Shown in pieces: positions 34,501 to 37,500 of a stretch of 64,000 bases of DNA (the first letter of the stretch is position 1; every line of letters starts with the position of its first letter). The DNA comes from Octopus sinensis (Eukaryota). The position numbers and the translations under genes are program-made. The stretch covers positions 66,960,001-67,024,000 of the forward strand of contig NC_042999.1 of assembly GCF_006345805.1 (NCBI RefSeq). The letters run 5' to 3'. The notes below the pieces were generated by a model, which saw only the letters and a list, made by a program, of their open reading frames with translations, did no database searches and was not told the DNA's origin.

Positions 34501-37500
34501 CTACGGCCACGTTCGGATGGTTTTCTTGTGTGCCACGTGCCACCGGCACTGGTACCACAAAGATACAAATTCCATTGATGTTCATCTATTTTGATTTGTT
34601 TTGATTTTCACTTGCCTCAACAGGTCTTCACAAGTGTCACAAGAAGGAAGGTAAGCACAGGTGGACTGACTACGTCCCAGGTAAGGGCCACGGGTTATGG
34701 CCTGACTAGTCTTGCCGGGTCTTCGGATGGTGTTATTATGTGCCACTGACATAGGTGCCAGATGAGGCTGGCGAACGGCCACGATCGGATGGTGTTTGTT
34801 ACGTGCCCACAGCACATATATATATATATATATACATATATATATATATATATATAAAAGAGAGGTTGTGTGGTGTCTGTCTCCTACGATTTAGATTCCT
34901 AACTACTCCCACATTTTGCGGTGCAGTGTAACCAAAATCGGATATCTTATAGTCGTGATTCATATCGAGCCCTTCTGGGTATTAGCGCGTGTCTACGATG
35001 AGTCTACGATTTTAAAAAAAATTTAAACAACAATAAGAAAAGCGAAAAGCAACAACAACAGCAACAACAATAAGAAAAGCGAAAAGCAACAACAACAACT
35101 GACTAGTAGTGCAAAGAGTGAAATGTTGAAACAAAAAGACATTTGAAATACCAAAATATTCAGTTCCTTCATAGACATCGAGAACCAATTTGGGGTACAT
35201 TTCAATCATGATATGTGCTATTTGTATGTGAACCGGAGTATTTAGAAGGAAACAAATGTGCAAAGCTGTTTCTCCCATGGGACCACGACTGTTCAGGCTC
35301 CAACAAGCCTCATGTTCTGTAAACTTCTGGTATTTATCTTCGCGATATTCTGAAAGAAGTTCTTCATCTGTTTTTAAAGGCGTTGCCTTATTTGTATCCT
35401 TGAGGGAGAGACAAAAAATAAACATGAAGAACACGTTGTAAACATGTTAGGGCTTTATGAGTCCCATTACATTAAAGAAAAAAAAAAGGGTTAGAATTAA
35501 TTTCATGGGATATAAATATTTACATATGCATGGCACCTTGGACAAGTATCCTCACCTATAATATCACACCAACCAAAAACTTGTGAGTGGAGTGGATTTG
35601 GTAGACAGAAAATTAAAGAAGTATATTGTGAGTGTCTGTGTATACATATGTATATATATATGTATTTATATTATATAGAGGGCACTATTACACATAGATG
35701 CCTCATGCTAGGAGGGAACCTTAAAGTCAAAACTACTTAAAATCAAATAGCCCGCCATTTATATATATATATATATATATATATATATATCATTATCATC
35801 ATTTAACGTCCATTGTCTATACTGGCATGGGTTGGACAGTTTGACCGGGATGGCATGATTTGGCATGGTTTTCTATGGCTGGATGCCCTTTCTAATGCCA
35901 ACCACTCTGAGGGTGTAAGGGTGCATTTACGTGCCATTTGCATGACACCAGTATTTGACACGACTGTGATTTTGCTCAGCTTGATGGGTCTTCTTCTCAA
36001 GCATGACATAATGCCAAAGGTCTCAGTCACTAGTCCTTGCCTCTGTGAGGTTCAAAGTTCGAAGATCATGCCTCACCACCTTGTCCCATGTCTTCCTGGA
36101 TCTACTTCTACCACATATGTAAATGTATATAAGGACACAGGGAAAAATGTGTCAAAGCCATCAGGAGGCGTTCGATGCTTGTTAGGGCTATACAGCGGTG
36201 GTGTACCCCCCTACTGTCACGTTCGTGTTAGATTGACAGTATACAACCATTCTATCGCCCCACCGCCATACATGTCTCTACGAGAGATTTAGAAATTCAG
36301 TATTTCTTATTTTGATAATCAGTGAATAGACTTCACTGAATTATAGATATATACAATTGCGAAGTCGAGACAAATATCACCAGCTGACCGGTGTCTGCTA
36401 CTCTAGGCCGATGAAGGACAATGATCCTGAAACACGTGTCCCTAGATGCAGCTTCGGCGGCCGGGGGTGTTTGTCTCCCCTTCGTAAATGTATATAAGGA
36501 CACTGGGAAAAATGTGTCAAAGCCATCAGGAGGCATTCGATGCTTCCTAGGGCTATACAGTAGTGGTGTACCCCCCTACTGTCACGTTCGTGTTAGATTG
36601 ACAGTATACAATCATTCTATCACCCCACCACCGAACATGTCTCTACGAGAGATTTAGAAATTCAGTATTTCTTATATATATATATATATATATATATATT
36701 ATGTGAAATAGAAAGATGAATAATCTTGTAGTAGATTAATCAAAAGTTTAACCGATACCTTGGTAGCAAAAATCACAGCAGTAAACAGCACGGTTGGAGG
36801 TACAACCATATGGTGTTGCAACCGTGCGTTGGTGCGGATAATTGAAATTAAAATATTATTGGTGAATTGAAGAAATGGAGCTGAACGCAGATTGAACAGA
36901 AATCGTTTTATTTCATTCTACACGTGTTTCGAAAGGCACAATTTACCAAAATCCGATTGAATAATGGGACCATATTGTGTCTTTCTCTTCAGGAAGAAAT
37001 AGGAAATCCGTTGGAAAAAACAAAAACAGAACAGAGGCGGAGCAAAACAAATCGAACTAGGCTCCTAAGAGCCCATGGCAAAACTATATATATATATATA
37101 CATACATATATATATACATACATATATATACATACATATATATACATACATATATATACATACATATATATACATACATATATATATATACATATATATA
37201 TATACATATATATATATACATATATATATATATATATATATATATATATATATATATATATATATATATATATATATATATATATATATATATATATATA
37301 TATATATATATATACATACATAGATACATGCATTCATACACACATACATACATACATACACACATACGTACGTACCTACGAACGTACATACAATCAGACA
37401 ACCAGACAAACATGCACATCTGCTTCTGCTCTTTTTTTTTCTGTGGAAAACAATTAGAAACCCGTTAAGTGCTCTCTACACATTTGCGACTAATAGCTTC

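Follow-up and report, generated by a model that had tools for sequence, protein, structure and literature searches.

Does a complete self-cleaving motif in the intron of a TRPV gene serve that gene, or is it there on behalf of something that inserted into it? The question is raised by a hammerhead on the minus strand of the window (the whole 64-kb stretch of octopus DNA analysed here), which lies in sense orientation within the first coding intron of an Inactive/Nanchung-type TRPV gene. The host gene was recognised from its concatenated minus-strand exon peptides, which match the insect TRPV 'Inactive' (E 1.5e-46) and also Nanchung and TRPV6, and one of its exons scores as an ankyrin repeat (Pfam); the exon-2 peptide, compared with a collection of 5.8 billion proteins, returned no relative. 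Exon 1 ends at 54181, with a GT donor at 54180, and exon 2 starts at 35398, with an AG acceptor at 35400-35399. These boundaries agree with the sense orientation, the ~18.8-kb first coding intron and the position ~1.5 kb before exon 2 that a first-pass annotation had given for the motif, and the predicted cleavage site falls 1,520 nt upstream of exon 2. The same annotation had proposed that cleavage could influence TRPV splicing or output. We find no support for this proposal in a motif that belongs to a dispersed repeat, of which the intron contains one more copy in sense orientation, already decayed. In this report, we describe the motif and its relatives in the window (Table 1), and we weigh the explanations for its presence in the intron.

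Table 1. Positions in the window of the host intron, the hammerhead and its parts, the related repeat copies and the neighbouring hammerhead
Feature	Position	Strand	Basis
First coding intron, 18,782 nt, Inactive/Nanchung-type TRPV gene	35399..54180	-	exon reading
Type I hammerhead, complete	36909..37001	-	direct reading, descriptor scan, shuffles, folding
Helix I 5' strand, UAUUUCUUC	37001-36993	-	direct reading
Core box C3-A9, CUGAAGA	36992-36986	-	direct reading
Helix II strands	36985-36974 with 36942-36931	-	direct reading
Helix II loop, 31 nt	36973-36943	-	direct reading
G12 A13 A14 A15.1 (GAAA)	36930-36927	-	direct reading
Helix III and loop, ACACGUGU	36927-36920	-	direct reading
U16.1; A17	36920; 36919	-	direct reading
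Helix I 3' strand, U36915 bulged	36918-36909	-	direct reading
Hammerhead-bearing repeat copy, ~290 nt, 34% G+C	36750..37040	-	nhmmer and pairwise alignments to paralogues
Paralogous copy, same intron, sense	46378..46545	-	nhmmer, alignments
Paralogous copy, palindrome right arm	61562..61690	+	nhmmer, alignments
Paralogous copy, palindrome left arm	61349..61560	-	nhmmer, alignments, 69% identity over 194 aligned nt
Neighbouring hammerhead, different family, opposite strand	36403..36445	+	direct reading, folding

When the minus strand is read directly, all core nucleotides of the hammerhead are canonical, and the helix register around the core is the correct one by the definition of type I, in which only helix I is open while loops close the other two helices. 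Helix I has 9 bp and one bulge; helix II forms 11 of its 12 pairs, with a single A.C mismatch and the G10.1-C11.1 pair present; and helix III consists of 2 bp (A15.1-U16.1 and C15.2-G16.2) capped by an ACGU tetraloop, with cleavage predicted at 36919|36918. This reading bears out the canonical core, the helix I and helix II lengths, the 31-nt loop, the palindromic 2-bp helix III and the cleavage site of the first-pass annotation, and an independent descriptor scan recovered the same site with a helix I of 9 bp and a helix II of 11 bp. Judged from its sequence, this is a true type I hammerhead, and its structure is complete. The Rfam hammerhead families (Hammerhead_1, _3, _II, HH9 and HH10) gave no match at gathering score, nor was there a hammerhead match at E<=10 on the 3 kb and the 626 nt around the motif; this miss is likely owed to the 55-nt helix II. 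Rfam matches around the motif were only microsatellite-driven miRNA look-alikes. The chance expectation was estimated from 200 dinucleotide-preserving shuffles of the window, which were searched with hammerhead descriptors at several helix minima. None of the 200 matched when helices I and II were each required to be at least 8 bp, or each at least 6 bp, and the loosest descriptor (helix I at least 4 bp, helix II at least 3 bp) gave 0.09 matches per window in the shuffles; extrapolation from the loose descriptors would put the chance rate at the observed helix lengths at ~1e-6 per window.

The family evidence comprises four copies at three independent loci, all within the single 64-kb window, and a profile built from the four copies re-finds exactly the same loci. 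Intron 1 of the TRPV gene hosts both sense copies (at 36.9 kb and 46.4 kb), and the other two are the arms of a palindrome at 61.5 kb. By nhmmer, the 46.4-kb and 61.5-kb copies match each other with E 1.2e-13, and the right arm of the palindrome matches the 36.9-kb copy with E 1.1e-7. The 36.9-kb copy is laid out as a ~45-nt 5' region, the hammerhead, a ~60-nt conserved 3' region (ATCTGCGTTCAGCTCCATTT), an AT-rich stretch and a tail with a GCACGGTTG/CAACCGTGC hairpin. The 46.4-kb copy has the CUGAAGA box at 46498-46492 and UAAAC at 46433-46429, a G12->U change that leaves a dead core; it keeps helix I (6 bp, a mismatch and 2 bp) and helix II (6 bp, a 2x2 internal loop and 5 bp), and carries ACATGTGT at 46430-46423 on the minus strand, with an AUGU loop and C17 at 46422. 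The right arm of the palindrome begins at its CUGAUGA box (61562-61568) and continues with GAAAC at 61624-61628, an AUAU loop and U17 at 61635. The left arm is 5'-truncated inside helix II and lacks the CUGANGA box; it carries GAAACAUAUGUC, and its 3' tail corresponds by homology to 36845-36750 and runs up to a short (TA)n.

The ribozyme core has been kept while the rest of the element diverged. All 15 core positions are identical between the 36.9-kb and 61.5-kb copies, whereas non-core identity is 52% (binomial P 6e-5), and the core of the 46.4-kb copy differs solely at G12; on these sequence comparisons, conservation of the core amid divergence suggests that the ribozyme has been under selection in the lineage of the element. 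The helices were compared pair by pair from copy to copy; a MAFFT alignment mis-registers helix II and the G12->U copy. Pair 2.2-1.2 of helix I is U-A in the 36.9-kb copy and C-G at 46.4 kb, helix II reads GAAAG/CUUUC at 36.9 kb versus GAAG/CUUC at 46.4 kb, a one-pair indel present on both strands, and distal pairs of helix II change between copies yet still pair. Loop 3 is palindromic in three of the four copies (ACGU, AUAU and AUAU). We considered the ACGU-AUAU difference as covariation for palindromy and downgraded it, since CpG decay and one transition are sufficient to explain the change and both AUAU loops go back to a single duplication, as its two arms. The observed/expected CpG ratio is 1.14 in the 36.9-kb copy versus 0.57 for the window, and its CpG sites read TG or CA in the paralogues; this low CpG decay reflects the youth of the 36.9-kb copy and explains its intactness.

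Tracts of (TA)n lie near the 36.9-kb copy at 37085-37100 and 36673-36698, and by the 46.4-kb copy at 46366-46381 and, ~80 nt upstream of that copy, at 46622-46681. The copies mostly adjoin such tracts, although sequence this close to one (120 nt or less from (TA)>=8) makes up only 11% of the window. We entertained the flanking tracts as marks of clean insertion and dropped this idea, as the left-arm homology at 61.5 kb puts the 3' end of the element at ~36750; in other copies, (TA)n probably arises from the AT-rich stretch inside the element. No head-to-tail direct repeat of the ~290-nt unit was found at any of the three loci, and beside the copies there is no RT or GIY-YIG reading frame and no long flanking ORF (few ORFs were run against Pfam). 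The element RNAs, with fold z-scores of -0.5, -0.8 and -1.3, are not unusually self-paired. Metagenomes scanned for ATCTGCRTYCARCTCCATTT, a 20-mer that lies outside the ribozyme, gave 37 loci, none of them homologous beyond the seed by nhmmer, and these are chance matches; a family-specific hammerhead pattern had 0 matches in the genome and viral collections.

Together, our data make likely a model whereby a genuine, intact type I hammerhead resides on a short (~290 nt), AT-rich, dispersed and non-autonomous repeat, and the motif would be in the TRPV intron because a copy of this repeat element inserted there. An inert transposon relic had been named in the first-pass annotation as the outcome that would refute a function; of this scenario, the transposon part is the best supported, by the repeat family, and the relic part fails on a copy that is intact and not decayed. 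We propose that the ribozyme serves the life cycle of the element by cutting multimeric or read-through element transcripts, and that cutting would be most efficient as a double hammerhead formed between two copies via the palindromic helix III, a role inferred from published metazoan hammerheads (PMC4209133, PMC7229834, PMC8557442, bioRxiv 10.64898/2026.07.22.740005). By analogy with known families, the element is probably mobilised by the machinery of Penelope-like elements (PLEs). The solitary 36.9-kb copy may self-cleave slowly as a monomer, within a few hundred nucleotides of transcription and before competing pairings arise, and its effect on TRPV output should be negligible, exon 2 being only 1.5 kb downstream.

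The 2-bp helix III bears directly on how such a copy could act. Metazoan type I hammerheads have a helix III of 1-2 bp, a small palindromic loop and G10.1-C11.1, and act as dimers, and newt and viroid-type hammerheads need the dimer because of a weak helix III (PMC6155905). The earlier proposal that the weak stem III at 36.9 kb needs a partner stands insofar as its palindromic type is known to favor dimers and a homodimer forms in silico: the monomer MFE structure keeps helices I and II, and the homodimer cofolds into a double hammerhead with an 8-bp helix III and a helix I formed in trans (-47.3 kcal/mol versus 2 x -17.2; ddG -12.9). However, both partners that were proposed for it fail. The two halves of a double hammerhead cut each other, each core acting on the site of the other half, and a partner must therefore bring an intact core and a matching helix I, beyond a complementary helix III. 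The sense-strand motif at 46418 can form helix III with one G-U, as had been suggested, but with G12->U in its core and 2 unpaired nt between its helix I strand and C3, it is no partner for a site (36919|36918) that its dead core would have to cut.

The second proposed partner, the plus-strand neighbour, fails on different grounds. It has a CTAGG/CCTAG helix I, a CCGAUGA core box with U4->C at 36409 and a 4-bp helix II followed by GAAACACGUGUC, carries GAAACACGTGTC at 36429-36440, and belongs to a unit (36119-36682) that is a 365-bp 1.5-mer with a fold z of -5.4. The TRPV transcript contains this hammerhead as an antisense image only, with no core and no matching helix I. With the 46.4-kb sense copy dead, that transcript offers no other copy in which the core is intact and helix I would fit. 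The neighbour and the 36.9-kb motif share GAAACACGTGT in inverted orientation, and its antisense image is consequently predicted to pair with GAAACACGUGU of the motif on the TRPV-sense transcript, with 11 bp to G12-U16.1; in a 641-nt transcript, the predicted pairing probability is ~0.98 over 9 of the 11 pairs and 0.69 at the last. Such modelling predicts that the inverted neighbour would sequester the GAAA box and block the active fold, not help it. More generally, an inverted neighbouring copy would sequester the conserved boxes, and activation of them by such a copy would be impossible.

The same folding calculations bear on whether the motif is catalytic at all. The predicted share of the hammerhead fold is 5e-3 to 1e-2 for the minimal 36.9-kb motif and 1e-7 to 5e-4 for three experimentally active retrozyme hammerheads. 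In growing transcripts the predicted share is <=1e-5, a value that we rejected as evidence against activity in view of the range given by the active retrozyme hammerheads; the one exception is the 11-bp pairing with the neighbour, under which the share falls to ~1e-12 or 1e-13. It is unlikely, in our judgement, that the motif is a non-catalytic look-alike, in which the boxes are kept as a recognition site at the protein or DNA level or the long helix II prevents the active fold. This explanation draws on the silence of the Rfam hammerhead models even at E<=10, on a helix II far longer than in characterised metazoan hammerheads, on a fold that is not thermodynamically exceptional (z -0.97) and on the weak in vitro activity of PLE minimal hammerheads; in addition, with its atypical 55-nt helix II the motif may lack the contacts between loops to which natural hammerheads owe their speed. 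The look-alike reading is opposed by the joint presence of the 15 core nucleotides, G10.1-C11.1, H17 and a palindromic loop 3, by three helices in the right register with compensatory changes between copies, and by a predicted fold share that exceeds that of the three active retrozyme hammerheads.

Domestication, in which the host keeps the hammerhead and co-transcriptional cleavage of intron 1 tunes TRPV splicing or output, is very unlikely, although a domesticated ribozyme would be expected to look like this one, on the sense strand of an intron, 1.5 kb before exon 2, and with nothing lost from its core or helices. Precedents exist in the intronic CPEB3 ribozyme (HDV-like), which modulates its host mRNA, and in the conserved intronic hammerheads of RECK (HH9), CTCL (HH10) and DTNB, which apparently derive from retroelement hammerheads. 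A role in tuning the host transcript has been proposed for the hammerheads in amniote introns (HH9 and HH10; de la Pena & Garcia-Robles 2010), and these and the CPEB3 ribozyme, like the 36.9-kb motif, are on the sense strand. However, HH9, HH10 and the CPEB3 ribozyme are single-copy and defined by orthologous conservation across animal classes, whereas the 36.9-kb motif is not matched by the HH9 and HH10 models of Rfam and is a member of a repeat, of which a further sense copy, with a dead core, lies in this intron. The intactness of the motif is explained by youth, the motif has no intact cis partner, and its GAAA box is predicted to be tied up by the inverted neighbour. Moreover, the axolotl hammerhead Ax353, with a helix III identical to its own, reaches only 22% cleavage in 1 h when monomeric and far more as a tandem dimer, and slow intronic ribozymes are reported not to alter splicing (Fong et al. 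2009, as related in PMC10919898). An intronic position is also common for such elements: 42-44% of Xenopus retrozyme copies are intronic, and intronic monomer copies are common in other animals. As a caution, a 'fully canonical' intronic ribozyme cannot be taken as evidence that a gene is regulated by it if it rides a mobile element.

Even less probable is a foldback or MITE-type DNA transposon with terminal inverted repeats that happen to hold hammerhead-like boxes. The 61.5-kb locus, a near-perfect palindrome of ~245 bp, has the appearance of such an element, but neither the 36.9-kb nor the 46.4-kb copy has an inverted partner, each consisting of a single arm, and the junction of the palindrome lies inside the element, at a differing point in each arm, as two 5'-truncated copies joined head to head would have it. 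A chance match in AT-rich intronic DNA deserves next to no credence, for although the hammerhead core is short and loose descriptors do match shuffled sequence, the shuffles gave nothing at the observed helix lengths, and this reading is already refuted by the family evidence, in which the same boxes recur in the same order in homologous copies at 46.4 and 61.5 kb.

A hammerhead carried on a short mobile repeat, the reading that we prefer, can be compared with several known systems. A short helix II and defined contacts of loop 1 with loop 2 characterise the hammerheads of Schistosoma Sm-alpha and newt satellite 2. They too are found on a short repeat, which in their case is abundant, and the similarity to the 36.9-kb motif does not extend beyond the core. 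Non-LTR retrozymes, which carry type I hammerheads in repeats of 170-400 bp (Cervera & de la Pena 2020, PMC7229834), share more with it: the type I topology, the 2-bp helix III with a palindromic tetraloop, the low G+C (34%), the ~290-nt unit and the predicted double-hammerhead homodimer. In the axolotl retrozyme Ax353 (Rtz353/HHR_Amex2), GAAACACGUGUA is identical to the 36.9-kb hammerhead, and in the mussel retrozyme Mg353 the corresponding segment is GAAAC-GCGC-GUC. In contrast, these retrozymes are arranged in head-to-tail tandems, whereas the present family has solitary copies and one inverted pair; their monomer RNA is highly self-paired, whereas that of the 36.9-kb element is not (z -0.8); and their helix II is ~4 bp with a small loop 2, as against 12 bp with a 31-nt loop. 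The plus-strand neighbour unit fits this class much better than the 36.9-kb element does.

PLEs offer the other close comparison, and about 30 Penelope families occur in octopus genomes. Their minimal hammerheads (min-HHRs) sit in the pLTRs (Cervera & de la Pena 2014, PMC4209133; Craig et al. 2021, PMC8557442), and PLE insertions have been described as head-to-head 5'-truncated pairs; a preference for (TA)n targets is described specifically for the Naiad clade. The 36.9-kb hammerhead differs from theirs in lacking the extra nucleotide between A9 and G10.1, in having a helix III where the PLE minimal motif has none, and in its much longer helix II (55-nt spacer); PLEs also have an RT/GIY-YIG ORF, which is not seen beside any copy of the present family, where there is no long ORF and few ORFs were run against Pfam. 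Naiad elements contain 'half-core' boxes 35-50 nt apart (Craig et al.), which we take as a lead only, the comparison being one by description. It would be a bolder step, and a rather unlikely one, to see in the motif an undescribed variant with a ~55-nt helix II on a (TA)n-targeting cephalopod Penelope-like lineage (candidates include Naiad-type elements, which are reported to be without canonical hammerheads but to have the 'half-core' boxes), the intact sense copy of which would also cut a measurable part of the TRPV pre-mRNA as it is being made, before the neighbour pairs with it and inhibits it. If the mobile-repeat model is right, a molluscan or cephalopod repeat family joins the long list of retroelement-borne hammerheads, with a variant that the curated Rfam models miss, probably through its long helix II, which matters for counts of invertebrate ribozymes. 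With PLE hammerheads the present family has in common the palindromic 15.2-16.2 and loop 3, G10.1-C11.1, a longer-than-usual helix II and a core that is kept in highly variable copies, and with PLE insertions the head-to-head 5'-truncated pair, the variable 5' truncation and the (TA)n flanks.

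On the minus strand, positions 37001 to 36909 read 5'-UAUUUCUUC-CUGAAGA-[GAAAGACACAAU ... 31 nt ... AUUGUGCCUUUC]-GAAA-CACGUG-U-A-GAAUGAAAUA-3', and every position of the hammerhead core is canonical (see table). Helix I has 9 bp and one bulge (U36915), helix II, closed by G10.1-C11.1, pairs at 11 of 12 positions with a single A.C mismatch, and helix III consists of an A-U and a C-G pair capped by ACGU; this architecture is that of a type I hammerhead, and cleavage would be predicted between 36919 and 36918. A structural descriptor scan of the window recovered the motif and no comparable second site, in 200 dinucleotide-preserving shuffles of the window no match appeared when helices I and II each had to reach 8 bp, or even 6 bp, and the loosest descriptor yielded 0.09 matches per shuffled window. 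Direct reading, scan and shuffles thus confirm the canonical minus-strand hammerhead described in the first-pass annotation. Rfam gave no hammerhead at this position at any threshold applied, which we attribute to the 55-nt spacing of the core boxes; the motif is therefore assigned to the class by structural definition rather than by a curated model, and its distinctive trait is the long helix II.

The same strand carries the exons of a TRPV channel: a search of the PDB sequence set with their joined peptides matched insect Inactive (E 1.5e-46) as well as Nanchung and TRPV6, and Pfam scored one exon as an ankyrin repeat. The exon boundaries give a first intron of 18,782 nt and, in agreement with the earlier placement, locate the ribozyme within it, in sense orientation and 1,520 nt upstream of exon 2.

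Coordinates of the hammerhead core, the related copies and the flanking TRPV exons
Feature	Position	Strand	Description	Basis
C3 to A9	36992-36986	minus		direct reading
G12 to A15.1	36930-36927	minus		direct reading
U16.1	36920	minus		direct reading
A17	36919	minus		direct reading
46.4-kb copy		minus	TRPV intron 1, sense orientation	self-comparison
61.5-kb locus	61349-61690	plus (right arm), minus (left arm)	two copies head to head, near-perfect palindrome of ~245 bp, joined at CUGAUGA box	self-comparison
TRPV exon 1	54456 (ATG) to 54181	minus	followed by GT donor	
TRPV exon 2 start	35398	minus	preceded by AG acceptor	

Self-comparison of the window revealed that this hammerhead is not unique but has homologous copies at two further loci, which match in pairwise nhmmer comparisons at E 1e-7 to 1e-13; a profile of the four copies found no fifth in the window. 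Alignment to the 61.5-kb left arm (69% identity over 194 nt) extends as far as 36750, which sets the length of the element at about 290 nt; it consists of a short 5' region followed by the hammerhead, 60 conserved nt, an AT-rich segment and a hairpin-bearing tail. The tail (36780-36830, minus strand) contains a strong hairpin, GCACGGTTG ... CAACCGTGC, around a second small palindrome (CAACCATATGGTTG, plus strand), and is conserved in part in that left arm. The 46.4-kb copy retains CUGAAGA and helices I and II; its loop is not palindromic, and it reads UAAAC in place of GAAAC (G12 to U). Of the two arms at 61.5 kb, the right begins at CUGAUGA and retains GAAACAUAUGUU, and the left is truncated within helix II. 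The palindrome is typical of the inverted insertions of Penelope-like elements (PLEs); it is also a possible assembly or replication hazard. The copies adjoin (TA)n tracts, near which only 11% of the window lies.

The copy at 37001..36909 and the 61.5-kb copy are identical at 15 of 15 core positions, against 52% of non-core positions in the same stretch (binomial P 6e-5). Relative to the 46.4-kb copy, helix I pair 2.2-1.2 is U-A instead of C-G, helix II has GAAAG/CUUUC instead of GAAG/CUUC, and the distal helix II pairs are altered yet still paired. Core and structure are conserved above background across the copies, and their differences therefore arose mostly in lineages selecting the ribozyme, as expected for a mobile element that uses it. 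CpG observed/expected is 1.14 in the copy at 37001..36909 versus 0.57 for the window, and the CpGs it has kept read TG or CA in the paralogues; the simplest explanation for its intactness is that this copy is young.

The monomer minimum free energy structure retains helices I and II, and the hammerhead fold lies within ~1 kcal/mol of it. When two such copies are cofolded, the predicted structure is a textbook double hammerhead (-47.3 versus -34.4 kcal/mol) in which helix III extends to 8 bp, helix I forms in trans and the core of one copy would serve the cleavage site of the other; this agrees with the suggestion that the weak, dimer-prone stem III probably needs a partner. Because each site is served by the partner's core, both partners named in the first-pass annotation can be judged. 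The 46.4-kb motif does form helix III with one G-U (ddG -12.0), as proposed, but could not act as a working partner: its G12 to U change and two unpaired C residues between its helix I strand and C3 prevent it from cutting 36919|36918, and in the reverse direction the helix I strand of the intact copy pairs only 3 bp in register. The plus-strand hammerhead some 500 bp away fails as a partner, belonging to a different family with U4 to C and being present on the TRPV transcript as antisense only. Since the two motifs share GAAACACGTGT, inverted, an 11-bp pairing is predicted between the neighbour's antisense image and G12 to U16.1 of the intact ribozyme, part of whose CUGAAGA box would also be paired; in a 641-nt transcript the pairing probability is ~0.98 over 9 of the 11 pairs and 0.69 at the last, and the computed hammerhead-fold share falls to about 1e-12 or 1e-13 once the neighbour region is transcribed. 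The generally low fold shares in longer contexts were dropped as counter-evidence to activity, since the same computation gave 1e-7 to 5e-4 for three retrozyme hammerheads of experimentally demonstrated activity.

This neighbour is the one type I hammerhead (36403-36445; core CCGAUGA, U4 to C at 36409) of a retrozyme-like 365-bp unit on the plus strand, 36119-36682, arranged as a 1.5-mer (36119-36317 and 36484-36682, 93-94% identical) and with strongly self-paired RNA (z -5.4); no monomer is releasable, because the second unit meets (TA)n before a second ribozyme. Directly upstream lies one copy of a repeat marked by a 22-residue ORF motif, which with its variants recurs on both strands at at least eight sites (~2609, 9011, 19862, 28103, 34197, 35813, 50183 and 58293) and suggests a SINE-like repeat of very high abundance. 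Elsewhere, a 564-bp repeat unrelated to the hammerhead family (58608-59168 and 60745-61307; 98% identical, 2.1 kb apart) has the look of a recent duplicate, dispersed or segmental, and a Tc1/mariner-type transposase remnant in several frames matches Pfam HTH_23 and DDE_3 (18199-19185, plus). Two minus-strand ORFs with a common 20-residue motif, 50722-51363 (no Pfam match) and 28926-29459, resemble the C-terminal region of a LINE (non-LTR) reverse transcriptase. Sub-threshold Rfam matches to mir-297, mir-466, mir-3149 and similar families (37085-37400, 38060-38250, 35620-35700) are (TA)n/(TG)n microsatellite artefacts.

A regulatory role in TRPV had also been proposed. Pol II covers the 1.5 kb to exon 2 in about a minute at most. 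The hammerheads of mussel repeats (350-390 bp) cleave at ~0.1 per min, and the monomer of the axolotl retrozyme hammerhead Ax353 is 22% cleaved per hour (PMC7229834); by analogy with either rate, only a small fraction of TRPV transcripts could be cut. PMC10919898 summarises a report that slow intronic ribozymes had no effect on splicing (Fong et al. 2009). The regulatory proposal is not supported, and we infer by analogy that the hammerhead would have little host effect.

Cervera and de la Pena (PMC4209133) describe most metazoan hammerheads as type I, with a helix III of 1-2 bp under a small palindromic loop; this helix is too weak for efficient monomer cleavage, and two copies form an active dimer. 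They found such motifs in PLEs and, in very large numbers, throughout animal genomes. The same group described non-LTR retrozymes as 170-400 bp low-G+C repeats with canonical type I hammerheads, of which the axolotl motifs cleave well when dimeric but poorly when monomeric (PMC7229834). Our motif follows the same design as the mussel ribozyme, a 2-bp helix III with a palindromic tetraloop, and GAAACACGUGUA, listed for Ax353 in the construct table of PMC7229834, is identical in it. In contrast to non-LTR retrozymes, the element is not in tandem and its RNA is not highly self-paired. Its insertion signatures resemble those of PLEs, which often insert with an inverted 5'-truncated copy and a microsatellite bias, a (TA)n preference being reported for the Naiad clade (Craig et al., PMC8557442); about 30 Penelope families are reported in octopus genomes. 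Within the window, the element could not be tied to any reading frame or sequence of a PLE. PLE terminal repeats are proposed as the origin of animal retrozymes in a 2026 preprint, which finds 42-44% of Xenopus retrozyme copies intronic and monomers evenly spread along chromosomes (bioRxiv 10.64898/2026.07.22.740005). The motif is best explained as part of an intact and young copy of a non-autonomous retroelement that bears a hammerhead and by analogy would work like the known PLE and retrozyme hammerhead elements: a known kind of retroelement-borne hammerhead, unusual in the length of helix II.
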